Positions 300 through 31,845 of a stretch of 32,000 nucleotides of DNA are shown here, one piece after another (position 1 is the first letter of the stretch; each line of letters opens with the position of its first letter). A model generated the notes under the pieces. That model was not told the DNA's origin. It did no database searches and saw only the letters and a program-made list of their open reading frames with translations. This DNA is from Wallemia ichthyophaga EXF-994 (taxonomy: Eukaryota; Fungi; Basidiomycota). The position numbers and the translations under genes were made by a program. Location: positions 1 through 32,000 of the forward strand of contig NW_008806282.1 in assembly GCF_000400465.1 (NCBI RefSeq), read 5' to 3'.

Positions 300-2636
300 C
301 TACGTTTTAGAATGATGGAGTAATTTCGGCTTGAAGATGGTGGCAGAATGAGCATCACCTTCAAGCGGAGCGTCATGCGAATATGCTCTGTCTCTCTGTA
401 AAACATGCATTCTCTCCTTAAACACCTCATCGCTGAAATCAGCATCTTTAGCAGGGATAGTGGTAGCGTCGCTCCCACTAGACACAGCCGAGTCGTTGTT
501 CTGCTCCGTCAACTCACTACTGTGTGTGATAATGGGGAAGGGGTACCCATCGATCTCATGTGTTTGGTCTTTCTGCCTGTTCACCTTTTCAGCGGTGCCG
601 TTCAACTCGTGCTCCTTTTCGTTTTCGACTTGGCTTTCATGTCGCTTTTGGTGGCCATATTGGTCGAACTCAGCTTGGTGGTAGTCGATAAGGCCGTGGG
701 GAACGTGCTGCTGGTAATGTGGATATGTTAAATTGTAGACGGGCGGGAACATCGGATTGAAACTAGCACCGGGCGTGCCAGCGGGTGCAGAGGGGCCGTA
801 GTATATCGGTGCTCCTGGCGCTGGGTTTAAGTAAGGGTTGTAGTGAGTACTAGGCGAGGAAACTACCCCTGGACTGAACGGACCTATACCAGGACTCATC
901 ATCTCTGGGACATAGCCGGGTGTTGGCGCTGCGAATGGTCCCAGGTAGAAGCCAGGCATAGAGGGTGTCATCGGTGGCGGGGCAGCCGCTCCTCTCGATG
1001 GTGGCTGGTGTGATAGAGGTTGGAATGAATTGTTGGAGAAGGTCGCAGGTGGAAGAGATATTTTTCCAGGATGTGCTACGCTCTTTGGTGATCTGGCTTC
1101 CGTTTTATTGAATCCATCTTCAAGGCTCAAGTGATCTATCTTTTTAGCTGCTGCCAAGGCAGCATCTGCGTAATCGTTTTGCGCCATTCTAGGTAATGGA
1201 TAGCTGGGTGATGGCTGCGCCCCGGCTGGTGGAGACAACGGCGTTGTGAACGGGGATGACTTGGATACCTCTGATGTATTCGATCCACCTGAGAAACCAT
1301 GCGAGGAAGCTGCCGTGGCTGGCACAATACCTAGTCCTGAACTAGGTGTTGACTGTGCACTGCTATGATTGAAAGAATCTGAGAAGGCATTGCTGCTGAT
1401 TGAAGATGGGGCTGGTGGTCGGGAACTAGTTGAATTGGTGAGAGTGCTCTCCAGATGAACCTTGAGTAGGCGTCCAGCTATCTCAAATCCATCGAACAAC
1501 TGCACAGCTTTGATTGCTTCAGTCTCAACTGCGAACGTCAGCACTGCGTAACCTTTGCTAGAGCCATCTTGGTTGGCAGCAACATCTGATCTAACGACAT
1601 TTCCTGCCGCTCTGAATATATCTTTGAGCTCTTGCCATTGTAGGTTGTAGGCTGGAGATAGGAATCAGAGAGACTGGTGGATCGACAATGGATACTCACG
1701 CAAATTGCAGACAAAGACTGTCCTGCTTGAGTGCGAGGGTGCAGAAGATGGAGTGAGATTAATCTAAAATTGTGAGTTGGACTGCCGGCATTCAAGAGGG
1801 TAAAAAAACGCACCGGAGGAGACAAACCAAGTACCTGCATTGCATGAGCACTAGGAGCAGATATGCCTCTGTTTAAGAGAGGCTCGATGACAGTGCTGGT
1901 ATTGTTATCGGGAAACTGTTGCGCAATGTTTGAATAATTGGAGGATCTATCGATGGTGATACTATCGGAGAGCATCCTCGGTGGAGCCCCAGGATGAGGG
2001 GGGTGAACAGAACCAGGAGCATGCACATGGTTAAATAGCGGCTGGTTCCAGTGGTGTAGCAGATGAGGTGGAATAGCAGCCATCGCGGGACGGATAGACT
2101 GGTTGTGTGGTTGAGATTGAGGGCCAGGTAAATCATATTCAGGTGGCAAGCGATCAGGCCTGACTTCAAGGGTTCTCGTCTGCCAGACGTAGCCGTTGTA
2201 AAGGTCAATAGCTTTAGCGGCGTCGATCTCGGAGCCCATGAGTACGTTGCCGTAGCCTTTACTCCTGTTGTCCAAACCGAGAGCGACATCTGCGCGGAGG
2301 ACGGTACCGGCCTTTCTAAAGAGATCTTTCAAGTCCTGCCAACGAACTCTGTAAGGTAGCTTCGAGGAGATTAGATAACGAGGTGCATCGAGTGATCGAT
2401 GCTCACATTTCCAACGAAAAGATGCGTACGGCCATCTCTTCCAGAAGCGCCAACGCCTGCACCGGGAGTATTCAGTGGAGAATTCCTCAACAAGGCGGCA
2501 GCAGTTTCAGTGGAGGAAGTGGCGCTGCTGATAACTTGATCGATTTCGACGTCCGTAATACCCCTCTATAAAATGAATAAGCGTGTAAATTACTCTGCTT
2601 TAAATTACAAACCTTCAACCCAAATTTATTTGACAT
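300..2636 (-). CDS. Two-RRM RNA-binding protein (Gbp2/Hrb1/hnRNP M-like RRMs) with long Pro/Ser-rich low-complexity regions; 5 exons
   Basis: Spliced read: MSNKFGLK | intron 2612-2566 (47 nt) | RGITDVEID...GRTHLFVGN | LPYRVRWQDLKDLFRKAGTVLRADV...SKGYGNV (RRM1). RRM2 reads RTVFVCNL | PYNLQWQELKDIFRAAGNVVRSDV...SKGYAVLTF...AVQLFDGFEIAGRLLKV. TAG stop at 302-300. Confidence 0.85.
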
Positions 2637-2721
2637 TCGTCGCGGTGTGGAATAACGTAGATCATCAAGCTCGATCTGTAACGCCCACGAGAAATTTAAA
2701 TTATAAATATTAAATAGAATC

Positions 2722-3350
2722 ATGCCACGTAACTCACGCTCTTCTGGTGGTAGTAGACCTTCCGCCTCATCCTCTGCACCAAGAAGCTCTCCATTCGGCT
2801 CTCAGCAAACCAGATCCGCCAGCACAGCAGCTCCAGCATACGGTGCACAACGTTCGAGTGGGTGGTTATTGCTCAACCACGTGCATTATCTCACATGCCC
2901 TAGATTACGCTCAACAGCAATCACACCCACAGCCTCAACAACAAGCTCAGCCAGCAGCAGCTCCTAGTGCCGGTGGCTCAATGATGGGCAATATCGCTTC
3001 AACTGCTGCCGGTGTAAGTTGCCGCAGCTCTTCTCATGAAAATCCACTGATTAGTAATCTGTTTTTAGGTTGCCGCCGGACATGGTCTGTCTAATATGCT
3101 TTTCGGCGGTTCTTCCAGCCAGCCAGCTCCTGTTGAGCAGCAAGCCCAGCCTCAACAACAGCCACAGCAACAGCAGCAACCACCTGTGTGTGAGACTCAA
3201 GCCAAGGACTTTGTTACTTGCTTGAACGCCACAGGCGACGTAAACAGCTGCTCTACGCTGTTAGACTTACTCAAGGTGAGAATTCTGGCTAATTAATTAC
3301 CTTTCTAATCTGTCAAATAGTCTTGTCAAGCAGCTGCGGCACCTTATTAG
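2722..3350 (+). CDS. MIX17: Mitochondrial intermembrane-space CHCH protein, Mix17/CHCHD2/CHCHD10 family; 4 exons
   Basis: MPRNSRSSGGSRP... presequence-like N-terminus; hydrophobic GSMMGNIASTAAGVAAGHGLSNMLFGG segment across an intron; twin CX9C (CETQAKDFVTC...CSTLLDLLK|SC); ends SCQAAAAPY-TAG at 3350. Confidence 0.9.
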
Positions 3351-3746
3351 ACTTGATTACTGCTGAAATATAGACAACGACATGTAACACACCACTACTC
3401 ATTTATCCATGACGTATATATTGATTGAATTTCTCATAATTCACACTGTGCTTTAACTGGAATGTCGCTGACTTATGTCACATCACCATTGATTTCTGTT
3501 TGTGGCGGTTTGAGCCGGGTTTTTGGAGCAGCAAAGCCACAGCAATATACATACACCCAGAATTACCCCTAAATTCCTAACTAATCATCGTATAAATATA
3601 AATCTGCAGCTTACCAACTAAGGTTCGAGTGACACAGCCAGCTGTCAGACACATTCCAATCCCCAAACTCTGGAATGTGACAACAGAGCGCTTAAATTGG
3701 TCCTACCCTTCTCTTGTTCTTTTATTTTCTTCCCTTCCGACCAAAA

Positions 3747-4734
3747 ATGTCAAACAACTTAAGATCGTCGAGTCCCTCTGATAGATTCATCAAGCCACAC
3801 TTGCCACCACTACAGCACAAAAGACCTTCGCCACCTGAATCTGATGATTCTGATGATGATCACTTCACCTTCAGTCCCGTCAACTCCCCTGCACTTAATT
3901 CTGGCACTTTTACAAACGGCAACAGGAAATTTGTTTTGACTCCAGCGCATGAATTCTACTACAGACAGAAGCTACTATCATTGGCTAGAGTGGGTTGTTC
4001 ACTCATAACACACTCCCTTGCTAACATCACCCAAGACACAATTCAAAACTGTCAACGACTACAGTACGCACGTCACAGCAATTGTACAAAAATTAATGGC
4101 TGCCGGTGTACGCCTCACTGAAACAGAAGCTACACACGCCTACATACGTGGACTACCCAATGTCACTGCTCAAGCTGTACTCTCTTCACTAGAAAATGGA
4201 ACCTCTTTTACAGGTGTACAGATACTGACGCAGTCAGTCGAAGAGGCACGATCATCTGCTGTTATGGCTGGTCAGTACGCAGCTGAGCAAGCCACCGAGC
4301 CTTCAGCCGAGCCAGTCGAGACACGCGCAAAGAAACCATCGACGAGCTCTAATCGCAGAGTTAGATACAGATCACACTCAGTTACTACGCAACCAACTTC
4401 CAATCACCTTATGACATCCCTCACTTCCACGCCTCAGACTTCCACCATGTCTAGACCTCGCTCTATTGCATTCCCTAAAACTCACAGACCGAGTATGTCG
4501 AATACGAACGATATATACGACTCAGATAGGACGCCGGTGTCTGACTCGCTGCCCAAGTTCACTCCACTTAGCCCTCCTTCACAATCTTTGCTAAGCCAGA
4601 CTGAAAATTTGTCTATTTGCTCGCCATCGAGACATCCAAGGCCTGTCGCACGAAGATCGCCGTACGCTTCCCCCACTAAGTCCTCACCAGTCAAGGCAGA
4701 AGGCACGTTTGGATTGGGTTTGGGGTTGCAATGA
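3747..4734 (+). CDS. Hypothetical protein with a Ty1/Copia gag capsid-like (Retrotran_gag_2/UBN2-like) segment and S/P-rich flanks; 2 exons
   Basis: ATG 3747; phase-0 intron 3990-4035 (GTGGGT...GCTAAC...CAAG) joins KLLSLAR to TQFKTVNDYSTHVTAIVQKLMAAGVRLTETEATHAYIRGLP; stop at 4734. Confidence 0.7.
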
Positions 4735-4904
4735 GCATAATATCAACATATTGGATGTAAATATAGTTAGGAATTACGGACAATTTGGATATCTGCAAAC
4801 TTAGCTCTATATTCCACTCTCACTTTTACTCTTCACGACCTATTTTCACTTTATTTTCACTCTATTTTGTAACAACAAATGAATATAGAATCAATTAAAA
4901 AAGT

Positions 4905-5546
4905 TTAGAGTATAGAAAGTGCAGCACTCATAGCGAGAGCAGCAGTCAAGGCAGAGATTGTAGCTGTGCTTGCGTTAGAATCGTCATCATCAGTGCTAGC
5001 ATTGTTGCTGGAAGCTGATGGACTGGCAGACGCAGGAACGGTAGCTGATGCATCTGGATATGCGCTGCCTTCAGGTTTGATTTCGAACTCTTCGGATTTC
5101 GCAAACTCCTTGTTCTGGTCTGTTGGGTCGGCGAAAACAAGAACATAACCCTTGCCTGGGCTGAGATTAACGCCTGCGTTGCTATCGATTTGGTATGAAC
5201 CGCGGTCTGATTCTATAATGCCGGTTACTGCCGCTTGTCTGGAGATTTTGTAAGTTGAAAAGGTGGTGTACGAGCATTACATTAAACTCACTTGGATGGC
5301 AAGACATCCTCGTCATCGTTCTTGATGATAGTGATGAACTGTTCGGGATCCTTTGAGAGTATATTTAGCGCTCTCAGTATTTCAGACACCTCTTTAACTC
5401 ACCGATTCACTCGATGTCGTCCACGCGAACGTCTGAGAATCTGAGTCAATCCACCAGTTCTTTGAATTTGGGACGGTGATAGTGATCTTTGCGAGTGTAG
5501 TGTACACGAGTGACAGAATAGTAAGTGTGAAAAGTGTTAATTGCAT
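4905..5546 (-). CDS. Secreted, probably GPI-anchored Ser/Thr-rich cell-surface protein (Kre9/Knh1-N-like Ig-type domain); 3 exons
   Basis: Signal peptide MQLTLFTLTILSLVYTTLA, then KITITVPNSKNWW...FAWTT, GKGYVLVFADP, an S/A/D-rich stalk and a hydrophobic tail ATISALTAALAMSAALSIL; TAA at 4907-4905. Confidence 0.75.
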
Positions 5547-5813
5547 CTTAAGTGATCTTTGTGATTAATGCAAGCGTTATCTGAGAAAGGAGTGTGAAAA
5601 TTTGGCTGATTATATAGTTCTGAACGTTGATTTAAAAGGCGTAAACTCAGTCTCAGCCTGTGGATATTAAATTTTGGATTCACACTAGTCTCATCTTCAA
5701 ACAGCATTCCGATCATTCAAACGGCCTCGAATTATTACTAGCACATGATAACGACAATAACACAGCTATTAATATAAACAATGCATATGATAGAAATATA
5801 AAAGCGCTGTCAT

Positions 5814-6626
5814 CTACATAGCTAATTGGGCTTGTAACTGTCTGAGTTCCTCGTCCTCGTCGTCTTCCTGGTCTTGAGAGTGCGGAGGAGCAGCGTTCGA
5901 AGGGGCTGGTGGTATATAGCCGCTCGAGCTGGCTTGTGCTGGTTGAGCGGGTGTCTGAGCAGCAGCGGGTGTGTGCATAGGCGCCCTTTCCGCGCCCAAG
6001 AGCCTATTATTCAGCTCATCCTGCTCGAGCTGCTCGAGCTCAACATTCAACTCATCCTCATCAACAGGGTCGTGATGCACGGGGTTCGATATCGCGTCAG
6101 AGATCTCATTGGTCAAATCCATTTGTTCGCGAATGCTGTCCATCGTGTTGTCCACCTTGTCTATATTGAGATTACCGTGTATTGATTTCAAAGCATCCGA
6201 GCCCTTCTTCATAGCGTTGATCGTCTCGAGGTTCATATTGGCAGATTCGAGTGCATTGACTTGCGACTCAAGCGTCAGTCTCGTTCCTGCGATTCTATCC
6301 AACTCCCCTTCGAATGCTTTCTTCTGGCGCAAGGCAGCCGTCGCGACTGTTAAAAGCATTCGTCAGCAAGATACGTCGATTGAGATGGGCAATTGACGTA
6401 CGGCGTTTGTTAGTCGTGGCATTTGACTTGGCCTTCTTTAATTCTTCGTCTATTTTCTTATTCAAGTGCTCCTCCTTCTTGTCGAGCATCAATAGCTGCG
6501 ATCTCAGCCCCACTATCGCATCTCGAGCACTTCCCCTATTATCCTTCTTGCCTGCAATTTGATTTAATTTGAATCTCCTGCGTATCTCCCTCACATACCA
6601 ACTATCCATGACATCCACGAGCTCAT
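5814..6626 (-). CDS. SNF7: ESCRT-III subunit Snf7/Vps32; 3 exons
   Basis: MSSWMSWIVG|KKDNRGSARDAIVGLRSQLLMLDKKEEHL...ALRQKKAFEGELDRI...LESANMNLETINAMKKG...; acidic C-terminus ending EELRQLQAQLAM. Confidence 0.95.
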
Positions 6627-6692
6627 TTTAGTTTTTTTTGGTTCTTGGTCGTTTATCAAAAGCGTGCGTCCCGCTTCTTATTTCTTATCACT

Positions 6693-6716
6693 GAGCGACG
6701 CGAGGCTGCGACGCGT
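6693..6716. promoter_or_regulatory. Two MCB-like (ACGCGA/ACGCGT) boxes in the 118-nt SNF7/SMC3 divergent promoter
   Basis: GAGCGACGCGAGGCTGCGACGCGT directly upstream of SMC3. Cohesin genes are established MBF/G1-S targets in ascomycete yeasts; function here is inferred. Confidence 0.55.
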
Positions 6717-6744
6717 GCCCAATTAATTTATAATTATACCAGAG

Positions 6745-10504
<3,760 letters not shown>

Positions 10505-10574
10505 ATGGCACTTGTATGTCTTGAAAATGAAAATGTATTAAAAGCCTTGCAGTTGAGACAAAAGCCTTAGTCGC

Positions 10575-10941
10575 CTAAACCTTATCGCCTAAACCTCTAT
10601 CCTTCAACTTCCTATGGAGTACTGATTCTATTGGGCAGCTATCAATCTTCTGTTGTGTTTTGTTGTAATGACGTCCACAGCAAATGTATAATTCGTCGAT
10701 TATCTGTCGGCGATGTAAGTTGTTAAGAGCATTGCCAATGACTCAGGCTCACGTTCTCGCACCTCGATTGCTGATAGTCATTCTTCATAAGGCAGCCTTG
10801 CAGCTTGCAAGCTTCGAGCTCGTCAGCGTTGGCGAGGACATGGAGGGAAGCGACGCACCAAGACGATGACAAGCGTCCGGTTTCTATAAAACAGGTTATT
10901 TTGTATTCTATTTGGCATAAATTTGTGCGTACATCGCCCAT
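10575..10941 (-). CDS. CMC4: Twin CX9C mitochondrial protein Cmc4 (MTCP1/p8 family), 73 aa, 4 exons
   Basis: Splicing three GT-AG introns gives MGD|KPDACHRLA|CKLQGCLMKNDYQQSRCEN|IIDELYICCGRHYNKTQQKIDSCPIESVLHRKLKDRGLGDKV*, with C8-x9-C18 and C29-x9-C39 plus the extra C13/C40/C54 typical of Cmc4. Confidence 0.9.
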
Positions 10942-10979
10942 TTTTAAAGGTTATTTTCTTAACTGCAACAGCGAAGAAG

Positions 10980-12926
10980 ATGTCAGGTTAGCCAAGGCGT
11001 GTGTAAAATGAATCAAATTAACAAATGCTGCCAGGACATCCAGTCTACGTAGACGAATTGGCAACAGTGGAGCAGCCATCTGGCACGCCTGTCCAGCCAT
11101 ACAAGTCGGTGGTGGAGATACTCACACAGACACCTGATGCTGCCATCTTCACAGTCAAGAAGCCTGAAGAGGGCGAGCCATCTCTTAAACCTCTGTCTCA
11201 GCGTACAGAAGCCGACTATGCTCCCATCTCTGGTGCTGCTTTGAAGAAAGCGAAGAAGACAGTTGAAGTTAACGCTAAGAATGCTGCAAAGAAGGCTCAA
11301 AACAAGGACAGACTTGACAAGGAGGAGTCTGACAGAGCTCAGAGAGAGCAAAAGCGCATCGAAGAAGCCAAAAAGGTTGTGCTCACATTAGACGACTCAC
11401 TGCCAAAACCAACAAAGGCAAAGGTTTATCAATTGGAATCAAAACGTGATCAACGTATCAAGATTTCAGGTTGGGTGCACAGACTTAGAGCTCAAAAGGG
11501 TATGACTTTCATCATTCTTCGTGACGGTACCGGCTACCTTCAAGTAGTTTTGTCTGGAAAGTGCACAGAGACTTTCGATGCTCTCACACTTTCTATTGAA
11601 TCATCTATCGAAGTCGTCGGTACACTCAAAGCTGTCAAGGAAGGCCAGTCAGCTCCAGGCAACCATGAATTGGTAGCTGACTTCTGGAAAGTCCTCGGTA
11701 AAGCTCCAGCTGGTGATGAAGCATTCACCAACAAAGTCAACAAAGACTCTGACCCTTCAATTCAAGCTGATTTGAGACACTTGATGTTGCGTGGTGAGAC
11801 TGCTTCAAATGTTATGAAAGCTAGATCTGCAGTACTTAGTGCATTTAGAGACGTCTTTAAGGATATGCGTGTTCTTGAAGTCACCCCTCCATGCATGGTT
11901 CAAACTCAAGTCGAGGGTGGTGCAACCTTGTTCAAATTTGATTACTACGGTACACCAGCATTCTTGACACAGTCCTCACAACTTTATTTGGAAACATGTT
12001 TGGCTAGTTTAGGTGATGTCTTCTGTGTTCAAGAATCATTCAGAGCTGAGAAGTCACTCACCCGTCGTCATTTGTCTGAGTACACGCACTTGGAAGCTGA
12101 ATTAGCATTCATCGACTTCTCAGACCTCCTTGACCACATCGAAGAGGCTATCTGTGGTGTTATTGATATTGTTCTCGCTGACCCAGCCATCTCTGCTATT
12201 ATCAACGAGCTTAACCCAGGCTTCCAAAAACCAAGCCGTCCATTCATGAGATTGGACTACAAAGATGCAATCAAGTGGTTGCGAGACCATAACATTCAAA
12301 AGCAGGATGAAGATGCAAACGGTGACAAGATCTTCTTGGCTGACGGCTCACCACAAATGTCAGATCATCAAGTCGGCGATGATATCGCTGAAGCTGCTGA
12401 AAGAAAGATGGTTGACACACTCAACGTTCCTGTCTTCCTTACTGGTTTCCCCAAGGACATTAAGGCATTCTATATGAAGAAGGTACCGGGTGATGAGAAC
12501 TTTACTGAGGCTGTCGATTTGCTTATGCCTAACGTTGGTGAGATTGTTGGTGGATCTATGCGTATCAGCGACTATGATGAGCTTATGGCTGCGTACAAAC
12601 ACGAAGGCATTGATCCTGCTCCTTACTACTGGTGGGTTAAAAGTGATTATTGTTCATCACTTTGCTAATAATTTTTGAAGGTACACTGATCAACGTCGAT
12701 TCGGAACTCCTAACTCAGGTGGGTTGAGGTGTTTTAAGTGAGATTGAGAATGAAACTGATAAACTTGTAGGAGGTTATGGTCTTGGTTGTGAGAGATTGC
12801 TTGCATGGCTGCTCAACAGATTCACTGTTAGAGACTGCAGTCTGTATCCAAGGTATGTATTGTCATTGTCTCTTTTCAAAACTCACGCTCCGTTTCAACA
12901 GATACACTGGTCGCTGCACACCTTAA
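10980..12926 (+). CDS. DED81: Cytosolic asparaginyl-tRNA synthetase
   Basis: OB fold (ISGWVHRLRAQKGMTFIILRDGTG), QSSQLYLE, FRAEKSLTRRHLSEYTH, GGYGLGCER, ending YPRYTGRCTP-TAA at 12926. Start is probably MSG at 10980 via an intron (alternative ATG at 11025). Confidence 0.93.
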
Positions 12927-12972
12927 AGCACACCTTTTTGAAAATTATACATTTCTACTATTGCATCATAAG

Positions 12973-14887
12973 CTACTTTTTGGGTACAATCTCTATCATT
13001 CTCATTGGAATACCATGGGTCTTGAGCACATCAATCACAATTCTTATCTTGTCACCTTGAACAATCACCTCTAATTCCTTTGGATTGTTCTGCATTGGAC
13101 TAGTCGTTGTACTACTGGCGCAAATAACTTTGAGTGAGTTAGCAAGATGATCCATTTTCAACTCGAACTCCTTGAAAGGTCCGCTGAGATGTGTTGTGAC
13201 TTTTTTGCCTTGACGTTGTTTAATCTGTAGCTTGAAGTGTGCTAGCTGACCCTTGATCACTCTACTACTACCGTCTTGTTGAGTCAATCTGGTGAATGGC
13301 TGCATATGCTGAATGATGCGTCCGTTAATTTCTTGACGTGGTATAAAGTCACTGTCGTCGAATGACACTTTGCTCTTCTTGTTTTGATTACTTGGTTTAG
13401 CGTATAGCATATTTGCAAAGTCCTCATTGTTCTTCCCAAGGACATACGCATGATCAGCTGGGTGAATGAGGTTGTTTGATTCTATAAAAGAGTTTGCGAT
13501 GCTTCTGATTTGGCTTGCGGTCAAATAATCATCAGATTTGACGCCTGCGGTAGTGAGCCACTCCCTCACAACCCCTTTAGGAGCCAAGTAGACATCCTCG
13601 ACAATGTAACCGACATTCTTAGTGTGGTTGTTGGTGCAGGGTTCCTCCTCAAACTGCTTTGTGCGCTTTTCATTCTGCTTCTCGGCAGCTGCTACTGTTT
13701 TGTGTCCTCTCCATTGTTTCACTAGTGGGTGTAAGCTATTGATTCGCGTTATGGTGATATTCGATTTATGCTCTTTGAAGGATAGGAGATCTTCCTTCTC
13801 CATTGCTTTCAGGAATTTTGTGGCTTTCTTGTAGCTGCTGTTCTTCAGCTCTGTGAGATTGGGATGTATCCTTGAAGAGCGATTGGGGAGGATATGTGCG
13901 GAGAGCAAGGTGGAGACTTGCATTGGTAGCTCTGCATTCTGTAACGAGGATGAGATGGCGTGGACGAGAGCGTTTCTAAGCATTTCGTCAACATCTGAAA
14001 ATGTGTGGTATGTTAGGCTTTATGAAGGCGTGGATTAAGTCAACGCACCAATGGCTGACAGATCAACGTGCTGGAAATCGCGTTCATCTCTTACATCCAG
14101 CTGCTCGACTTGAGCTGGCAGACTATCACTTTGATCTGCGTTAGTGTCGACGTCTTGAACATCTTCAATCTCGCTATCGCTGTCGCTATCGAATAGAACA
14201 TCTTGTCTATGCCCGTCGGGAATTTGCTTTGGCTGTGTACCTACGAGCCACAGCGAATCATTAATAGAGTGGGTGATAAGCACCGCTTTGCCTGTGGCTT
14301 CTAGGTTCATTTGGGAAGTTGGCATGGCAGTTCTGCCTACGCAGACAGGTGCTGCATTTGCGCCGTGGTCTGCTACAGCAACCAGAGCGCCTTCTTGGAC
14401 ATGAGGAAGGCTATTGGGGTCATTTTTGAGCGCCACGCCCGGTGCCATGAGATCAGCGCCAGTTGATATCTTATCAATCACGAAAGACCACGTCGTAATC
14501 ACAGGAAGGAGAGTAGGCTTTTTGAAGAGAGTGTACACTGTGGAGCGAGTTAGTGCGGGCTATCCTAAGAAGTGCGCCCACTCACCACTCGGTATGAACT
14601 CGTCTTCTGCCTTCCCAATCGCTATCCATAGTGGATCGTTGCTGGTAGCGCTGTATATAAGCTTGTAAGAGGAGTGAGTGGTGTTTAGGAATCGGAGAAG
14701 GTTCCAAACACACCGCATTTTCACCGTTGTAGGTTTTTATGCGCATCACTGAAACTACATCCGGGAGGAGCAGCTTGGCATCGTCGTCACTGAGCTTGTA
14801 TTGCTCCTGTAGCTTGTTACGCAGCTTCTTGCGGTCCGAGTTCTTCAGCGTCGTCTGAGGTTTGGCAGTGAAAGGTTTTTTGAACAT
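12973..14887 (-). CDS. TMA64: Translation factor eIF2D/Tma64 (ligatin): pre-PUA, PUA, SWIB-like and SUI1 domains
   Basis: MFKKPFTAKPQTTLKNSDRKKLR start; GADLMAPGV PUA motif; C-terminal SUI1 (RQGKKVTT...CASSTT...EVIVQGD); stop at 12973. Confidence 0.9.
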
Positions 14888-14981
14888 GAGTGAGAGGTTA
14901 CATCATAATCAATACATAACTTTGCTTACAAAAAGAAGATAAAAAGAATAAAGACGTAAAACACAGCCCAAGACGCGTATT

Positions 14982-15430
<449 letters not shown>

Positions 15431-15546
15431 CTAGCCTCATTTATAATATCGGGAGGCGGCTGAGTGACGTGGAGAATTGATTATGCTGGGACCACCGTTG
15501 AACAGGTACACTCAGTTATATATCAAGTTATATACATAGAACACAA

Positions 15547-18438
15547 ATGATGGATCCTTTCTCACTTGGTGTAAACCTGTCGCCGGTAAGTGTCCTGCTG
15601 CGCCTCCCGCGACTCCCCACTTAGTCACACAAAGGTCGTGCTTAAGACACTTGTACGGCATCTAATAAAGAAGCGCAATAACAATACAAACAAATCTGAA
15701 ACTCCCAGTACACCCAACGACGAGTACGCGTTTGATCAGGTTGGTTGTTATCCCGGTGGCTGCGTCTCAATCTAACACCCGCAGACATTCAAACTTACAA
15801 GAGCTTTTCTCGATATCGCGATGAATGTTGGTTGTTTATATTCCATGAACCCCGCTGATTTCAAATCCAGCACCCCGTCGAGGATCTTCAAAGCCTAGGA
15901 TCGACATATATCCCCCCGCCTTTCTGGGTTCATAACGTTGCTGTCACTGTCCCCATGTCCATTATAAACAACGCCGCTGAGTATCTCATCAAGGCTTTCG
16001 GCGGTGAGCAGCCGATGCGCGCCGCCGTTGGCGGTACTAGGTGGTGGCAGGTGAGACCAACTCCTGGATTACCTTCTGAATGGATTTGCAGTGAGTCCAT
16101 CTGTTGCTTATAGTACTCCTCTCACTCCACTCCACTCAGTGAAAAGCGATGTAAAGCTGGCTACCAGGAACAACAAACCAAATAAACCACGTGAACAACC
16201 TAAAGACTCCTTCACTCCTCAATTCTTCAAAGACATTGAAGGCCTCCCACGTACCATTCTCTTTGTTCACGGTGGTGCCTACTATTGGGGCTCCATTAAT
16301 ACCCACCGCTATCTAATTTGGCGCATGGCACGAAAAATGCGAGGTAAGGCATTTGCTGTCAGCTACAGACTTTCTCCTCAATACGGATTCCCTTGCGCAC
16401 TGCAAGACGTACTTAGCGCCTACCTATACCTTCTCTATCCACCAGAGGGTGCTCCACACAAAGCAGTAGATCCATCCAACCTTATTTTCGCAGGCGATAG
16501 TGCAGGAGGTGGTCTATTGCTCTCACTTTTACTAATTATTCGTGATCTCGGCCTGCCCTTACCCGCAGGCTCTATCCATATCTCGCCCTGGTGCGACCTC
16601 TCACATTCATTCCCATCAGTACTGAGCAACTATGAAACTGACGTCATACCAAAGTACGGTTTCGTACACAAACCATCCACTCTCTGGCCACCACCTAGCG
16701 AAGAGCTTCTTCAAAGAACACGCCAACATATCAAATCGTCAACACAAAGATCCAAATCTCCACTTCGGGGGGTGGGATCAGCTGCATCTCGCAAAGCAGA
16801 GGAAGGCAGGATAGAAGAAGATGCGATAAACGAGGCAGCGGGAATGACTAATGAACGCGGACACGAGAAGCTTGAGCCACCTCGCGATGTCCCTACTGTT
16901 GATCTAGATGGCAGGACGGTAGAGCTCAAAGGACAGATACAGATGTATGCAACCAATGAGCAAGTAGGACATCCATATGTTTCACCTGTGCTGGCACACT
17001 TGGGTGGTTTGTGTCCTTTATTCATCATGGCTAGTGACGGAGAGCTGCTGCGGGATGAGGGTATTTACATCGCTCACAAGGCTGCTCGTCCTGACGACTT
17101 TGAGTATAAAGAAGACGCAAAGAGACGTCTACCGAGCATGAACGGAATTGAGGGTAGATTTGGACCTACCAAGGTGCATTTGCAGGTGAGTGTTGGGTGT
17201 TTGGTGGTGGTATACTCAGACTTATAACTGACAACTCAACCAAAAATGAACAGGTTTACGACAAAATGTGTCACGATCTGCCCCTGTTTAGCATGGTCAC
17301 ACCTGCTAAATATGCTTATAGGGCTATGGCGGCATTCTGCTTCCAGGTGACGAAAGATACTACAGTTCAACCATCACCTGCATTACAAGGCTCAGATATT
17401 CCAAACACTATGTCTGATCTCGAGCTTGATAGTGCTGCTGAATCGCCCTCACCACTTAGGAAACTCGACAGCCCAGCTGAAGCACCATCACCTTCTACGA
17501 AACTCGACAGTCCTGCTGACGTACCTTCACCTTCTAGGAAGATCGACAATCCAGCTATAGCACTCTTGCCACCACCACCATCACCAGGTAAACCAAAGAG
17601 AAAGTTCTCCTTACTCGGACTGAAAAACAATGAAGGTGCAGGTGCTACATCAATTGACATGGAAAAAGCAGCAACAGTGAGCTCACAAACAGGTACGCCA
17701 GCAAGTGATGCAGAGAGACCAATAAAGTCAGGACCAGGAACAGCTGGGAACATGGCTGTTTACGATGAATCAATGGCATTCAAAGAGAGAAATATGATCA
17801 GAGAAAGAGTATCGCTCGTTGGACAAATCAGACCAATGGAATCATCTGAGAATATGGATATTCTACGCATGCCCGCTGATGAAGTGGGAGTATTTAAACC
17901 AGCCGCAGTTAAAAGATATTTAGAAGGAAAAAACAAATGGATGCATAAATTCAAACATACCGCCAAGAATGTCGAAAGGCAGCGCGAGAAAAGCCTGAAA
18001 GAATCGAATATACATGCAGAGAAGAAGATTAAAGATAGTGACAATATATTCGACACACCGCAAGTGACATGGCGGTGGCAGTGGGCGTTGGAGAATGAGA
18101 GACCACCACCTGCAAGTATTGTAGCAAGAAGAGATACGCAAGAAGCACGCAAACTGGTACAAATAGTAGATAACGCTGATAGTAAGCAAAATAGCAGAAC
18201 ATTAAGTCTATGGACGCTAGTAATGCACTTGATGAGTCCACAAAAGAGCAAAGCTAGCACGAATGACGACGGGGATGATGTCGCGCCTTGGACGAAAGAC
18301 ATTGAGAAACTCAAAAGAAAAGATGGCAAGAAAGATGAGGGACAGACAGTATCAGAGAGTGATTCGCCTGAAGAGGAGGAAATCAATATCGATAAACGGA
18401 AAGAGCAGTGGCTGAAAAATCACGTCAAAGATGAGTAG
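15547..18438 (+). CDS. Alpha/beta-hydrolase, hormone-sensitive-lipase (Abhydrolase_3) family esterase; multi-exon
   Basis: HGGAY oxyanion motif, GDSAGG nucleophile, SDGELLRDE acid region and MCHDL histidine region. The exact 5' exons are less certain. Confidence 0.85.
17425..17556 (+). repeat. Degenerate 39-nt coding tandem repeat, about 3.4 copies
   Basis: Encodes LDSAAESPSPLRK / LDSPAEAPSPSTK / LDSPADVPSPSRK / IDNPA; the DNA units share AAACTCGACAG. Confidence 0.85.
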
Positions 18439-18675
18439 TTAAGTGTACTTGTAGCTTTTGTGTATTTTATCAAAGGATTTCAGAATAACTTGGCTGTCTA
18501 AGATTCCTTTAGCTGGCTTTGGCTGTCAGATGATACATTAGACAAAAGAAGTGGGAAATGGATTGTAGAGAGTGTTTGTACTGCTAATCAGCACCTAATC
18601 ACCAAAACAAATCGAACAAAAAGATTAATTTGTAAAAATATTGCATTTCTAGGCCTTTCATATCTACCATCACGA

Positions 18676-20319
18676 ATGGCTTCAACTTCGCAAACGTAGG
18701 CGACAGGAGATATCGAATACAGCGCACAAAGCTCACCCAAAAACCAGTGCAGAATCTGAATGGAAGAATCAATTAAGAGTGCCGCAAAAAGATTTACGTC
18801 CACAAACTGAAGTGAGCAGCCAATCAGAGAGATATATTCGTTGGCTGACAAAAGCACAACAAGGATGTCACAAAAACGAAGGGAGGTGAATGGGAGGATT
18901 TTGGATTAAGGAGGGAGCTGCTTATGGGTATATTTGAAGCCGGTGTGAGTCGACTCGGTTCACAATGAGCTGCATTTCTCACGATGAAATTTAAAGTTTG
19001 AAAAGCCATCACCAATTCAAGAAGAAGCGATTCCATCTGCTATTGCAGGCAGGGATATTTTAGCAAGGGCTAAGAATGGTACAGGTAAAACTGCATCATT
19101 CGTTATTCCAAGTTTAGAGAAAATCAACGTACAGAAACCAAAGATACAAGCTTTGCTCTTGGTTCCAACTAGAGAATTGGCTTTACAAACTTCCCAGGTT
19201 TGCAAATCACTCGGTAAACATTTAGGTATACAGGTTATGGTCACAACAGGTGGTACAACGTTAAGGGATGATATTATGAGATTATCAGACCCAGTTCATA
19301 TTCTAGTTGGTACTCCTGGTAGAATATTGGATTTGGCTGGTAAAGGCGTTGCAAATCTCAATGAATGTCCAACATTCGTTATGGACGAAGCAGATAAACT
19401 TTTATCTCCAGAGTTCACACCAGTTATGGAACAGTTGCTATCACACCTTCCTTCTTCTAGACAAGTTATGCTCTTCTCTGCAACCTTCCCACTAATTGTG
19501 AAGGACTTTAAAGAGAAGCATATGAAAGACCCACATGAAATCAATCTTATGGATGAATTGACACTCAGAGGTATCACTCAGTATTACGCTTTCGTCGATG
19601 AAAGGCAGAAAGTTCACTGCTTGAATACACTCTTTTCAAAATTACAAATCAATCAATCAATTATATTTTGTAATTCAACTAATAGAGTTGAATTACTTGC
19701 AAAGAAAGTTACAGAGCTTGGCTACTCTTGCTTCTTTTCTCATGCAAAAATGTTACAAAGTCATAGAAACAGAGTTTTCCATGATTTCAGATCAGGTGTT
19801 TGTCGTAATTTAGTTTGCTCAGATTTACTGACAAGAGGTATCGATATTCAAGCTGTCAACGTTGTCATAAACTTTGATTTCCCTAAAAACAGTGAAACGT
19901 ATTTACACAGAATTGGTAGATCTGGTCGTTACGGTCATTTGGGTTTGGCTATCAATTTAATCACTTATGAGGATAGATTTAACTTATACAAGATTGAACA
20001 GGAATTGGGTACTGAGATTCAACCAATTCCTTCACAAATTGATAGATCGTTATACGTTGCACCAAACGCTAGTGATGACGATGGTCAAATTCAGCAATCT
20101 CAACAACAACAAAAGGGTTTACCTACTTTACCACCAACTCAACAAGTCATGAACGCTTATTCACAACCACCACCTCAACCAACATTCAATCAATCGAATC
20201 AAAATCACCAGTATCAACAACGTAGTAATCGTGGTGGATACAATAGTGGATATTATGGAGGATCTGGTTTTCGTGGCAGAGGTGGTGGACCACCACGTGG
20301 AGGAGTTCCTAGAGCTTAG
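18676..20319 (+). CDS. DHH1: DEAD-box RNA helicase Dhh1/DDX6; 4 exons
   Basis: [14 protein letters not shown]|DVTKTKG...FEAG|[10 protein letters not shown]; [29 protein letters not shown]; Q/N-rich and RGG tail. Confidence 0.97.
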
Positions 20320-21048
20320 AACTTTCATTTTACAGTTAATCAGTTTATCTTTCCTTTATCTTTTCCTTATGTGAAATAGTTTACTCTTTCATTTCCTCCT
20401 CATTTCTTACGTTTCAATTCACTTTATTGCTTATACTACTTGAAGCACTCAAATCGTAGTATAATCGATGGCTCACTACTTGACAAATATTATTGCCATT
20501 TCCTCAAATCCACAATTCCTCAGTGTTGAATTAGTTTCTACCTTAAACTAAACACTAAATTAAGCACTTAACCAACCATCAAACCTTGAATAAATCTAAG
20601 AAGCTTAAACGCAAAGAGTACATTATTAAGACGTTCAACTTTCCACCTCACCTCATTCCATTTACAAGCCGTCAGGACGGGATACTTTACACTTTCACAG
20701 AATATTCTGAATTATCGTTAAGTTTAGATATCCTCAATAACTTAGGTGATGTGTTCAACAGACATCATGCGCATATCCAACACACCTCTACCTACACTCT
20801 GTAAACGACTAACAAACTAACAAAAGGCCTTCCGTATACACACAATCAGCCGAGAAAAGTTTTTTTTTGTTCAATTTGATTTTGTAAGTTAAATGCACAA
20901 ATCACATTGAAATAATGCGTTATGCTGGAAGTATTGGGGAATTATCAATATAATATCAAGTATACAATGAGAAGTAACTGAAGTGACTGTGAACTTGTTA
21001 GAAAATCGTATGTACTGTGTTATAAGACAACTAATACAGCTGATACGT

Positions 21049-21137
21049 GATCAGACGTTTAAGATATATTATCAGCATAGAGACGGTTCAAGTGAACCAA
21101 GTCAGAAAGCCATGCATATGAATCTTAATCATCATCT
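21049..21137 (-). ncRNA. Box C/D snoRNA B (predicted 18S C49 2'-O-methylation guide, yeast numbering)
   Basis: C AUGAUGA (21135-21129), D' CUGA (21105-21102), GGUUC/GAACC hairpin, C' AUGCUGA (21078-21072), D CUGA (21054-21051). Guide AUAUGCAUGGCUU pairs 13 nt (one G-U) with 18S AAGCCAUGCAUGU. Flanking arms UUAUAAG...AGCUAUAC and GUAUCAGCU...CUUAUAA form an external stem. Confidence 0.8.
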
Positions 21138-21228
21138 TGTATAGCTAGTAGCAATTACTTATAATCTATACTCACCTAGAGCTAATTGTCAGTGTATTCA
21201 ATTATGATGAGACCATGGCAAGACAGAG

Positions 21229-21315
21229 AATCAGTCTATCATTTAAGGACAGCAGTCCATCCACATAAGCCATGGAAAGGCGTTGGATAATACATGCGTT
21301 TAAAGCATCATTTTG
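21229..21315 (-). ncRNA. Box C/D snoRNA A (SNORD45/U45-like 5' guide; predicted target is the 18S U equivalent to human Um172)
   Basis: C box AUGAUGC (21311-21305) and D box CUGA (21234-21231). Guide GCAUGUAUUA (21297-21288) is complementary to conserved 18S UAAUACAUGC, followed by U and a degenerate D' (CCAA). Flanking intron arms GAGAGGCUGUGGCAG and UUGCCAUGGUCUC can pair as an external stem. Confidence 0.65.
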
Positions 21316-21585
21316 ACACGCTGCCACAGCCTCTCAAGTAATTCTACTCACAACGTAGTGGTTCAGGTTGAAGAGTTGAGGAATAAAATTTGGAAATCTC
21401 ATTTAAATAATAAAAAACATAAATTTATTACATCATTTGATTTTAATCACAATACTTGTTTCAAGAGGTAATTCTGCTTACTTGATGACTTTGTACTTTA
21501 GCTATTTGATTGAGTTATTTGGAGTTATACCTTAAAATTGAACTTGAGTTGGGGAAAAAGAACTACAGCATTTGAATTGAACCGC

Positions 21586-22952
21586 TTAGTCTGCTTTGTT
21601 TTGAGTGTAATCCTATTCAATACCATCATCAGACACCGAGAAAACCAACTTAAAACAAACTAACCTCCATCTCAGCGTCCAAGTCTTCAGCTGATTTGGC
21701 AACTCTCTTCTCTTGCTTTGGCTGATCGCTGCGCTTTTTGGTTGGTTTCCTAGTGAAACCGTGTTAATTGATCTGCTCCAACGACTGCCGGTATAATTGG
21801 ATTTATTAAAGAATTGAACATTAATGACAACCCCAACGTATCCAAATATAACAGTGCAACAACGTGAAAGACGAAACTCACTTGATAGCCTTCTTGGTCT
21901 TTGGCTTAACAGTGGTGACTGCCTCAGCAGGCTTTGGAGCTAATCTTTGAATTAATCCGCTCTTATCTGATGATTCAACGACTATTTCAATCTTGATTGG
22001 TCTGTCTGTTGATTTTATATTGAAGAAAAAGCGCTCGTCAGTCATTTTGTTCTAAATCAATGCAAGCACACATTATTTAGATAGTGTGGGGTGTGTTTTT
22101 CCCAGCAATGCATTGTAGACTCTAGCTGACTAACTGAAGCTTGAATCCCTTTCAACTAAGCTACTCAAAGTGGGCGTGATTAGGGTCATTGGCGAAGTAT
22201 CAAATGGGTTTGTCTCAACTGCCTATCCAATTGAGCTGACTGTCAGCCAATACCTGTCGCGCGTGATACTGAAGATCAAGTCGGTTAGCTAGACATTTGC
22301 GAGCTGAGTGTGGGATGATTCCGTCACTATACGCGTCACTCTGAGTCGCGTCGCGTCGCTCCAACCAGTCTAAGCGTCAGCGAGTCTGCTCAGTATGAGC
22401 TTATGACGAGTAATGCTAGAAACATGCTCAGTCATTGCAAGTATCGTACATACTCACACAACTATCTAAATAATGTGTACTATGAAAAGGTAAGACTAAC
22501 TGTTGTCAATGACGCGACCATTAAACTCCTTAAAAGCCTTGTTGCCATCACCTTTTCTCTTAAATCTAACTTGACCAAAGCCCTTCGAGGTTCCTCTTTG
22601 GTCGTAGCTGATGCTGCACTCAGCTACTGGTCCCACAGTTTCAGTCATCAATTCCTAAAGCGGTGTGAGTAACAAATATAAGTTATTGAATCTTGCTCAC
22701 CTTAAGCGCGTGGTCATTAACGTCTGGTGGGAGGTTGGAGATGATGATCTTCTTAGCCTCCTCATTGAGTGCAGCACCATCCTTGGTCCTTGGAATGACA
22801 CGATCAGCAACAGGCTTAGCGCCTTGAGCCATACGCTTCGATTCACCCTGTTTAGCGCCGCTGAGACGCTTGCGCTGAGTGGTTTTGCGATGGCTTTTGC
22901 GTTCTTGACGCTTAGCCTTAATAACGTCTTCGAGTGGCTGGTCAATGTTCAT
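21586..22952 (-). CDS. YRA1: mRNA export adaptor Yra1/ALYREF (THO complex subunit 4); 5 exons
   Basis: N-terminal UBM MNIDQPLEDVIK; RRM KIIISNLPPDVNDHALK|ELM...RGTSKGFGQVRF...FNGRVIDN|RPIKIE; C-terminal UBM KSAEDLDAEME|DY. Introns 22700-22655, 22500-22006, 21881-21750, 21664-21613; TAA at 21588-21586. Confidence 0.9.
22068..22478. repeat. 18-bp perfect inverted repeat bracketing YRA1 intron 2
   Basis: ACACATTATTTAGATAGT (22068-22085) is the exact reverse complement of ACTATCTAAATAATGTGT (22461-22478). Confidence 0.95.
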
Positions 22953-29505: not shown

Positions 29506-31845
29506 ATGATAAACAAATTAAACTCAATATTTACGATCGTTATACTTCTAGCGCTCTGTCCAGCATCCATGTGCTTCGGCTCTGGTGATATTTCCGAAAT
29601 ATCCGGTCTAGAGGTAAGGTTCAGTTTGTTTGACATTGGTTCAGAATGCTAAAACAGAGCGTAGGACCGCGCCTACAGACATGGAGATATCGATAATACG
29701 CTACTTGAATTGCTTTTTACCGTAGGCTCAAGCAGCGTGATCAAATCATTCCTCAAGAAAGCTTTCACTGGTTCATCTGGGAAAAAGTTTGACGTAAAGA
29801 ATGTCAAAAGAGTCTACTTTGGTAACTGGACAAGGGACCTCAGTCAAGCAATGGACGTATCTACCTTGACCAAGTTCAGTCCATCTACAATCACCTCCAT
29901 TGTTGCGGTCCTTGGCTTTCTTTCGTTCGGCTATGGCTCAAGAGAATTTGAAGTAAATGAGGAAATCTTGGGATGCTACAGACCTGAAGAGCATATTGAC
30001 AATCCAAAGAACTACGCAGATGCACCAGAAGGCTCTCCAAGAGAGATAACCGGCTATGATAAATTGCGTGGCGGGCTCGTTGACGGTGAATTAGACTTTG
30101 ACGAAAGGACAGGAATGAAAAACTACATAGCTAATGAAGACGGTGATTGGGACACTAGTTCAGAATATATCCGCAAAAATCTAATCGAATCCATCGAGCT
30201 CGGCAGAGAGGCGAGAAACGGTGGTACTGATGAGCAAATGTGGCATGCTTTGTATTTGCTTGGCAGAGCACTTCATTGCGTCGAAGACTGGCCAGCACAT
30301 TCAAACACAATCGAAGTCACCCTGCAATCACTGGGCTACTCAGATGTTTTCACTCACGTCGGAAGCAATGTAAGGGTTGAAGCACCCGACGGAAGAATGG
30401 TATCGCCAATCGTCACAGGAACATTTGGAGGTGCAGACTTCCTCCATTCCCTCCTTGGTGAGGCTACCGACAAGCTAAGCAGTCAAGGAATAGGTGATTT
30501 GAGTACGACTCTGTCTCAAAACAGGGAAAGCAATAACTCAGACCGGTTCAGAAAACTATTAGCTATGCTGCTCAAGTCCAAAGATAAGGGGGAAGCTGAT
30601 AATGACGATGAGGAAGGCCACCCTAGTGCTGATGACACAGTCAACAAACTGGATGACATCAGTCGTCACACGCATGAGGACTCTATTGATGAGAGTGAAG
30701 TTCGCGATATAATTAGGCAACTAATTAACATTCACGACGATATTGCAAGAACCATTGATGCAGTTATCGAGAAAGTACCCTTCATAAGCGATATACTGGA
30801 TGAGGCTTCTAATACACTGCAAGTTTTTATATTTTCCACTTTAGAACCTGTTCTCTCGCCTATTTTAAAGGATTTAAAGGACGTGATGTTCGAAGCCTCA
30901 GCTTGCGTAGTCGATGACGACTCTCAGCGTGAGGTCTTTGATGATCCCGACGCAAGCGACCCAACTCACTCGATGCTTGCAAAGGACCACTTTGGAAACG
31001 TACTTAACGCGCCTGCTGGTAGACTGGCGAAGTTGATGATCACCCACATTGTCAATGCTGTAGTTAAGGATGGCTGGGATGGGGAAGCGTAAGTGTCGCT
31101 GCAATTTTCACACCAGTGCTGACGCGCTATGCATAGGGACCCTAGCTCAATCGCCGATGAAGCTCTTCAAGCTCTCCATCATCCAGATTTTCAAAATGGT
31201 TCTGCTATTCAGGAAGATATGATGCAATTCGTCAAAGATTGGATTGAGTCTCAAGGAGAAGAAAAAGATGAAGTCCTGCGTAGATTGGAGAGAGACAGCG
31301 TTCTCGAACATCGCAATACAACTGATGGACTAAGTGGTGGGTCAATGAACCCAACTGATCAGGAGAAATACGGCAAATACTATGGTGCCAGTCAGGGTCT
31401 TCAAGGTCTTGCTGCGTCTGGGGCCCTGGATGGACTTCCTGGAGGCGAGCAGCTGAGTGAAGGTCTTACCGCCTTGCAACTTGGTGGTGGTGACACGAAT
31501 GAGTCTGTCGAACGCTCAAGATACGGCAGTAACAACCCAGCTCAGTACCGATCAAGCCACGAGGATAGTGGTGAGTATGCTAACGAGAGCTATGGCTCTG
31601 GCTTCAACTCAGGAAATGAATATCGTTCTGGAAACCATTATCAATATACTGGCTATGGAGGTCAGCAATCTCCTTACGGTGGTGGCGGATTACAGCCTAA
31701 CTACGGCAACAGCGGCTACGGTGGTCCACAAGCTTATGGTAACCCTGCTTACCCGGCATACCCAAACCAGCAATATGGCTACGGTTATACTGGTCAAGAG
31801 TACGGTAATGCGTACGGACAAGATTCAAACTATTACACTCAATAA
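29506..31845 (+). CDS. HET-C domain protein (heterokaryon incompatibility Het-C family) with signal peptide and Gly/Tyr-rich tail; 3 exons
   Basis: MINKLNSIFTIVILLALCPASMCFGSG signal peptide; YRHGDI, VYFGNWTRDLSQ, EEHIDNPKNY, LGRALHCVEDWPAHSN, DPTHSMLAKDHF motifs; G/Y/Q-rich C-terminus; TATAAAAG at about 29390. Confidence 0.88.

Follow-up and report, generated by a model that had tools for sequence, protein, structure and literature searches.

In the halophilic basidiomycete Wallemia ichthyophaga EXF-994, J056_004646 is a genuine host gene rather than the relic of a mobile element, and the core of its product likely has its ancestry in retrotransposon gag. Overall, we find the observations best explained, with moderate confidence, by a host gene whose core derives from the capsid C-terminal domain (CTD) of a Copia element and works as a regulated adaptor. 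We describe the gag derivation as probable rather than proven, since every match to gag is sub-threshold and no gag was found in 1.84 billion proteins. An initial annotation, made from the DNA sequence of this region, had proposed a domesticated Ty1/Copia gag. Its host-gene component stands, and Copia/Ty1 capsids are the only family indicated by our searches, but all of the matches that indicate this family remain below threshold.

The DNA analyzed here (hereafter, the window) is a stretch of 32,000 nucleotides from one end of contig NW_008806282.1. Within it, J056_004646 is a two-exon gene on the forward strand at 3747-4734 (Table 1), and its spliced product of 313 aa is identical, letter for letter, to EOR00834.1 / XP_009268111.1. 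Read without splicing, the frame shifts and the product ends after 135 aa. The 46-nt intron proposed in the initial annotation was confirmed at its full extent, and the spliced product contains the exact protein string quoted there; the evidence for splicing consists of the reference gene model, which equals the spliced model, and of conservation. The database name of the product is hypothetical protein, and a name or domain was absent in every source matched. We likewise found no mention of its locus tags in the literature searched, nor in those supplements of PMC3849046 that our search covered.

In NCBI models from several W. ichthyophaga strains (441 aa, E3P* tags; P0001, P0009, P0010, P0012), the upstream MIX17/DUF2076 gene is fused to J056_004646. 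The fusion model joins about 2700-3296 of the window (forward strand) to 3817 onward and drops the first 24 codons of J056_004646. Because these codons are kept in three Wallemia lineages, and because MIX17/DUF2076 and J056_004646 are two separate genes in the annotations of both EXF-994 and W. mellicola, we rejected the 441-aa model; the fusion is probably an annotation error.

Table 1. Features of J056_004646 and of its product, with positions in the window.
Feature	Position	Strand	Basis or remark
Exon 1, codons 1-81	3747..3989	+	ATG at 3747; model identical to J056_004646
Spliceosomal intron, 46 nt, phase 0	3990..4035	+	Donor GTGGGT, branch site GCTAAC, acceptor AG; inside the capsid-like core
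Exon 2, codons 82-313 and stop at 4732-4734	4036..4734	+	Gene model
N-terminal arm, residues 1-59	3747..3923	+	AF2 disordered; S/P/D/N-rich; orthologue alignment
Helical core, residues 60-170 (spans intron)	3924..4302	+	AF2, PF14223, Copia VLP match, hhalign, Foldseek
Stretch aligned to Retrotran_gag_2, residues 66-124 = profile 78-136 (spans intron)	3942..4164	+	Pfam
C-terminal arm, residues 171-313	4303..4731	+	AF2 disordered; S/P/T/R-rich; no Pfam match
RRVRYRSHSV, residues 188-197	4354..4383	+	Orthologue alignment, consensus motifs

The orthologue in W. mellicola (P0002) is 81-82% identical to the J056_004646 product, a value within the range of the housekeeping neighbors. In ENA metagenome data we recovered a third Wallemia lineage, AT-rich and about 69-70% identical to each of the two named species, whose sequence combines two short contigs from different samples. 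In this lineage (L002, L004-L006, ENA KERN20-1 contigs), the GC3 of the gene is 0.21, compared to 0.42-0.43 in the other two. The intron occupies the same codon boundary in all three lineages, after ...LSL(A/S)R, with a length of 46 nt in W. ichthyophaga, 43 nt in W. mellicola and 50 nt in the third lineage, and the three intron sequences are mutually unrelated. The intron is genuine and ancient, in line with the earlier suggestion that its presence reflects long residence as a cellular gene.

Comparison of W. ichthyophaga with W. mellicola gave a pN of 0.14 and a pS of 0.72 (saturated); Nei-Gojobori dN/dS was 0.06 for the whole gene, 0.047 over core residues 60-170 and 0.092 over the tail. 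Comparisons with the third lineage showed a like pattern (pS 0.82, pN 0.23). J056_004646 is under strong purifying selection in every segment, and its frame is intact in three lineages. A lack of purifying selection had been named at the outset as grounds for abandoning the domestication reading, and the overall dN/dS shows that selection is present.

No homologues outside Wallemia were found in word-indexed protein searches, run with the full protein and then with the core profile, and a scan of JGI metagenome contigs gave no match. Run exhaustively with HMMER over 1.84 billion representative proteins, the core profile returned only Wallemia proteins and no gag at E 0.001 or better, apart from a sole non-Wallemia match (P0005) to a tandem-repeat protein whose score was summed over six repeats and which we treated as spurious.

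The surroundings of the gene are those of an ordinary cellular locus. In protein database searches, J056_004646 forms one cluster per species, with no paralogues detected. Window positions 300-14900 correspond to 6734-20925 of W. mellicola contig L001 with order and orientation preserved, and the collinear block holds an RRM protein, MIX17/DUF2076, J056_004646, KNH/Snf7, SMC, AsnRS and eIF2D. A syntenic orthologue outside any element is thereby documented in W. mellicola, while the third lineage is known only on short contigs. The larger open reading frames scanned elsewhere in the window matched alpha/beta hydrolase, DEAD-box helicase, Myb/SANT or Het-C families, or had no match, and no transposon domains were detected in the large frames scanned. 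No direct or inverted repeats of at least 40 nt occur within the whole window, and thus we find no LTRs in it. Translation of the flanking intergenic DNA in three forward frames matched no Pfam family, and the 313-aa product has no CCHC motif of the zinc-knuckle type and a single Cys. These scans bear out the initial description of ordinary, single-copy surroundings with no zinc knuckle, protease, integrase, RT or LTR nearby, and the synteny comparison proposed with it found the locus collinear. Dispersed copies with LTR or pol remnants, which would have pointed to a decayed element, were not observed; we found one copy and no remnants.

Several other features of the window are worth recording. 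Downstream of the J056_004646 orthologue, a W. mellicola gene model (L001 11148-12803, minus strand) carries Snf7 and Kre9_KNH Pfam matches in one 421-aa product. In the window counterpart (4908-6627, minus strand), a separate ATG opens the KNH part, whose beginning resembles a signal peptide (ORF 5394-5546, minus strand); the 421-aa model is probably two adjoining genes merged. The interval 19000-22000 has a GC content of 0.36-0.37, compared to 0.39-0.50 across the remaining window, and takes in a gene for a Dhh1-like DEAD-box helicase (19153-20319), whose C-terminal tail is rich in Q and G, together with the sequence that follows. At 29710-31845 (forward strand) lies a Het-C homologue (Pfam E 3.5e-147) with a long C-terminal tail of low complexity, rich in G, Y, Q and N.

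Having established J056_004646 as a host gene, we turn to the evidence that links its core to Copia gag. The full protein has a single Pfam match, PF14223 (Retrotran_gag_2), at E 0.03 and 14.2 bits. This alignment covers 59 positions on each side, consistent with the ungapped gag alignment of the initial annotation. With the cores isolated, PF14223 came first for every orthologue: W. ichthyophaga scored E 0.0053, W. mellicola 0.015 and the third lineage 0.0012 (18.8 bits); in the latter two, the alignment reaches profile position 165-167 of 172. The second Pfam match of the third-lineage core was the Ty3/Gypsy-type family PF03732 (Retrotrans_gag; E 0.081). A Pfam search had been proposed as a check on the domestication reading, and it returned the expected family as best match throughout, though at sub-threshold scores. 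The orthologues, at 14.2-18.8 bits, do not reach the gathering cut-off of 27, so we do not file J056_004646 as a PF14223 member and instead call it a probable remote derivative. Among 19 reversed, globally shuffled or block-shuffled controls, the best match had an E of 0.023 (DUF1659), and none matched a capsid family.

A phmmer search of 177,635 PDB sequences with the third-lineage core (reporting limit E 10) returned a single match, the Copia VLP protein 8s41_A (E 1.2), with query positions 10-75 aligned to positions 96-160 of the 187-residue chain. PDB sequence searches with the full protein and with two profiles gave nothing relevant, Copia being found only by the third-lineage sequence. 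When aligned directly by hhalign, the three-lineage Wallemia core and a Copia CTD alignment scored 23.8 (P 0.0016, probability 16%, 77 columns), in a profile-profile comparison that is shallow because the Copia side holds only three close sequences, namely the 8s41_A stretch and two short PF14223-bearing fragments. This score was reached by none of 300 column-shuffled Wallemia profiles (mean 10.7, maximum 20.3) and by none of 73 natural 111-residue segments from other Wallemia proteins (mean 9.7, maximum 15.0). The Copia stretch equals PF14223 positions 82-145, and the register obtained by way of Copia is that of the three direct Pfam alignments (profile position = core position + 71). The affinity to PF14223 is thus a reproducible best match, in a consistent register and above controls. 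The PF14223-like signal is sub-threshold but reproducible, all gag matches lie below accepted thresholds, and the lines of the gag link are interdependent, drawing as they all do on one short motif signal (LLSL...AxG...LP). Divergence is too great for a tree to place the sequence in a gag lineage.

Structure prediction gave a compatible ranking. AF2 models were built from three-sequence alignments and are of low confidence, with a mean pLDDT of 49.8 in the full-length model and 56.5 in the core model (67-79 at residues 60-120). They contain five helices (66-78, 87-103, 110-118, 125-132 and 139-167), and the remainder is disordered. For the full model, Foldseek ranked the Drosophila Copia capsid first (8vvw_A; E 0.85, not significant), followed by several HIV-1 CA entries, with Ty1' CA-CTD at rank 34. 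For the core model, the first rank went to Ty1 p22 CA-CTD (7nlh_B; E 2.5, not significant; 87/91 columns, TM 0.44 on target) and the ninth to Drt2. The best matches had an rmsd of 7-9 Å (7 Å for 7nlh_B), for models with a pLDDT of 50-57. In a viral library, caulimovirid coat proteins and polyproteins led the higher-probability matches; caulimovirid coat proteins share the retroelement capsid fold. Since the models are low-confidence and derive from three sequences, the Foldseek E-values are not significant and the fold evidence is one of ranking. In the AlphaFold and Foldseek comparison suggested initially, Copia capsid and Ty1 CA-CTD rank first, but at non-significant E values of 0.85-2.5.

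How much of the capsid was kept can be read from the same alignments. The aligned gag part consists of PF14223 positions 78-167 of 172 and Copia chain positions 96-160, with nothing for profile positions 1-77. By sequence, the part kept is the C-terminal domain half of the capsid only, because the aligned part is the half adjoining the place where the zinc knuckle would come, and because the best structural match is a CA-CTD too. Of a full two-lobed capsid with CCHC knuckle there is no sign, residues 1-59 being modelled as disordered and the product having one Cys. With the CTD half only, Arc/PNMA-like capsid formation is unlikely. Arc and PNMA are also domesticated gag genes, but both of their capsid lobes are retained and they assemble into capsids. 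The analogy to Arc/PNMA drawn in the initial annotation accordingly had to be given up, since the N-terminal lobe (PF14223 1-77) is absent; the CTD-only Ty1 p22, Drt2, SCAN and RTL8 fit instead.

The core is flanked by two arms that had been described from the outset as disordered and rich in SP/TP sites, and this description was accurate: they are S/P/T-rich and modelled as disordered. The 313-aa product contains 13 S/T-P sites, SPTK and SPVK among them, and 12 of the 13 do not vary among the three lineages. The N-terminal arm contributes four invariant S-P sites and also bears an acidic SDDSDDD cluster. Invariant columns across the three lineages make up 75% of the N-terminal arm, 68% of the helical core and 50% of the tail. 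That the N-terminal arm is disordered yet more invariant than the helical core suggests that motifs for binding or modification are densely packed in it. In the C-terminal arm, 7 of 8 S/T-P sites are conserved across all three lineages, and the invariant motifs are RRVRYxSHSVTTxPTSNHLM, SIAFP, FTP(L/I)SP, CSPxRH, SPYxSPTK and a terminal FGLGLG. Nine of the ten residues of RRVRYRSHSV are invariant, with R193 replaced by H in the third lineage, and this segment contains putative RxRxxS and RxxS sites of the basophilic-kinase type. The SPTK in the arm is a full CDK-type consensus. These kinase classes are predicted solely from consensus motifs.

We compared J056_004646 to known gag derivatives. 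The Copia-type Gag CTD (PF14223; 8VVW/8S41) gives the best or only sequence match, in a consistent register, is helical as well and is the top Foldseek match. Unlike it, J056_004646 scores below the family cut-off, lacks the N-terminal lobe, zinc knuckle, pol and LTRs, and has an intron, a single copy, synteny and long conserved disordered arms. The Saccharomyces proteins Ty1 p22/p18 and Drt2 resemble J056_004646 in consisting of the capsid CTD half only and are the top structural matches of the core model. Drt2 is, in addition, an endogenized fungal Pseudoviridae gag (PMC12530519), as J056_004646 probably is. Through the dimer interfaces of their CTD, both p22/p18 and Drt2 bind Gag and prevent particles from assembling (PMC10951436, PMC12530519). 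Drt2 and p22 are nevertheless near-identical to their target Gag and are found within or next to Ty relics, whereas J056_004646 has no detectable resident counterpart, no gag having appeared at E 0.001 in the exhaustive search. It also differs from them in predating the three-lineage Wallemia split, at synonymous saturation, in being strongly constrained and in having extra arms.

Crtg12 and Crtg13 of the Dothideomycetes are, like J056_004646, single-copy, syntenic and constrained fungal genes, and they derive from Copia gag (PMC8321522). As they belong to a different phylum (Ascomycota), J056_004646 would be an independent event. The screen of Wang and Han (2021) required presence in at least two families and detectable gag similarity, and Wallemia has no mention in that paper (PMC8321522). 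Two properties that it asks of co-opted gags, syntenic orthologues outside elements and purifying selection on an intact frame, are found in J056_004646. In vertebrates, SCAN and RTL8 likewise represent a capsid fragment re-used in or as a cellular protein (PMC8321522, PMC12530519). They differ from J056_004646 in their Ty3/Gypsy rather than Copia derivation, in their occurrence in animals and in their partner domains. SCAN is a dimerization module, and its dimerization is a model for the mechanism that we propose.

In this mechanism, the helical core of about 110 residues would descend from the CTD of a Ty1/Copia-type Gag capsid, a piece captured before at least three Wallemia lineages diverged. 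The N-terminal capsid lobe, zinc knuckle, pol and LTRs would have been lost since capture or never included, and a spliceosomal intron would have been gained inside the capsid-like core. By analogy with Gag lattices, Ty1 p22/Drt2 and SCAN, the capsid CTD fold may be a self-association (dimer or oligomer) module, and the arms, judging from their motifs, may be docking and regulatory regions controlled by basophilic and proline-directed kinases. In that case the protein would be a regulated dimeric adaptor in ordinary cell physiology, neither a capsid nor an arms-race factor. We infer self-association, phospho-regulation and a role that is cellular rather than antiviral. The cellular adaptor is favored over transposon restriction because evolution is very slow in all segments, no similar resident gag was detected, the genome is repeat-poor and long arms are not noted for p22 or Drt2. 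The W. ichthyophaga genome measures 9.6 Mb, repeats make up 1.67% of it and introns average 61 bp; its repeat table holds tandem repeats and DNA transposons only, with no LTR class (PMC3849046).

The core could instead act as an anti-retrotransposon restriction factor of the Ty1 p22/Drt2 type, in which a CTD-only fragment co-assembles with the Gag of an invading Copia element and poisons its particles. The capsid half that was kept and the ranks of p22 CA-CTD (1) and Drt2 (9) for the core model agree with such a function, as do the precedent of p22 and Drt2 themselves (PMC10951436, PMC12530519) and the low repeat content and missing LTR class of the genome (PMC3849046). However, the specificity of p22 and Drt2 depends on Dimer-1 residues matched to the Gag of the target subfamily (PMC12530519), and the 1.84 billion proteins contained no gag at E 0.001, assuming that any Wallemia elements are included there. 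Purifying selection is, moreover, strong in every segment of J056_004646. Had the gene been locked in an arms race with an element, one would expect it to evolve faster. Large conserved phosphosite arms, again, are not noted for p22 or Drt2, and we consider restriction of this type quite improbable.

A different objection concerns ancestry: J056_004646 may be an orphan Wallemia protein whose core resembles Copia gag by chance or convergence, with no transposon in its past. We think this unlikely. It would accommodate the sub-threshold level of every gag match, the scrambled control that reached E 0.023 on an unrelated family, the want of homologues found outside Wallemia and the low confidence of the structure models. 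Yet Copia/Ty1 capsids came out on top in the strongest searches (24,736 Pfam families, 177,635 PDB sequences and 350,542 PDB chains), three orthologues match PF14223 in one register, and the hhalign score exceeds 300/300 shuffles and 73/73 natural decoys. That J056_004646 is a pseudogene or the decaying relic of a retrotransposon, or else forms capsids like Arc or PNMA, is scarcely credible, although gag similarity as weak as that observed might suggest either. A relic would not be expected to keep its frame intact in three lineages, with synonymous change saturated and non-synonymous change low, or to be syntenic and single-copy with no LTR or pol, and we rejected the decayed element on the selection and synteny results. 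The Arc-like capsid former was rejected because the N-terminal lobe (PF14223 1-77) and zinc knuckle are absent.

Co-option of Copia gag is already known in fungi, from Crtg12/Crtg13 in Dothideomycetes (PMC8321522) and Drt2 in Saccharomyces. Gag co-option in general is well documented in animals and rare in fungi, where one systematic screen found three deep events (PMC8321522) and Drt2 was described separately. The distinctive features of J056_004646 are an intron gained in the capsid domain, retention of the CTD alone, phosphosite-rich arms and divergence beyond annotation thresholds. If our reading of a Copia-derived adaptor is true, the Wallemia case would place an independent co-option in a basidiomycete class that branches early. 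It would mean that capsid CTD-only derivatives can turn into slowly evolving cellular genes, beyond transposon restriction factors, and that along the way an intron may arise in the capsid domain and conserved regulatory arms may be joined to it. Genes like J056_004646 can sit below standard annotation thresholds; in this case, every source says "hypothetical."

At its most far-reaching, the finding could represent an ancient, Wallemiomycete-specific capture of a Copia CTD in a heavily phospho-regulated protein, with either a core cellular role or that of a long-lived genome guardian, a scenario we offer as a long shot. As a cellular protein, J056_004646 might be, for example, a cell-cycle or stress adaptor acting via its conserved CDK-type and basophilic sites. 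A restriction factor, if that reading were true, could help to keep Wallemia genomes almost free of LTR elements, and capsid poisoning by a long-lived guardian would help to explain the near-absence of LTR retrotransposons in these genomes.
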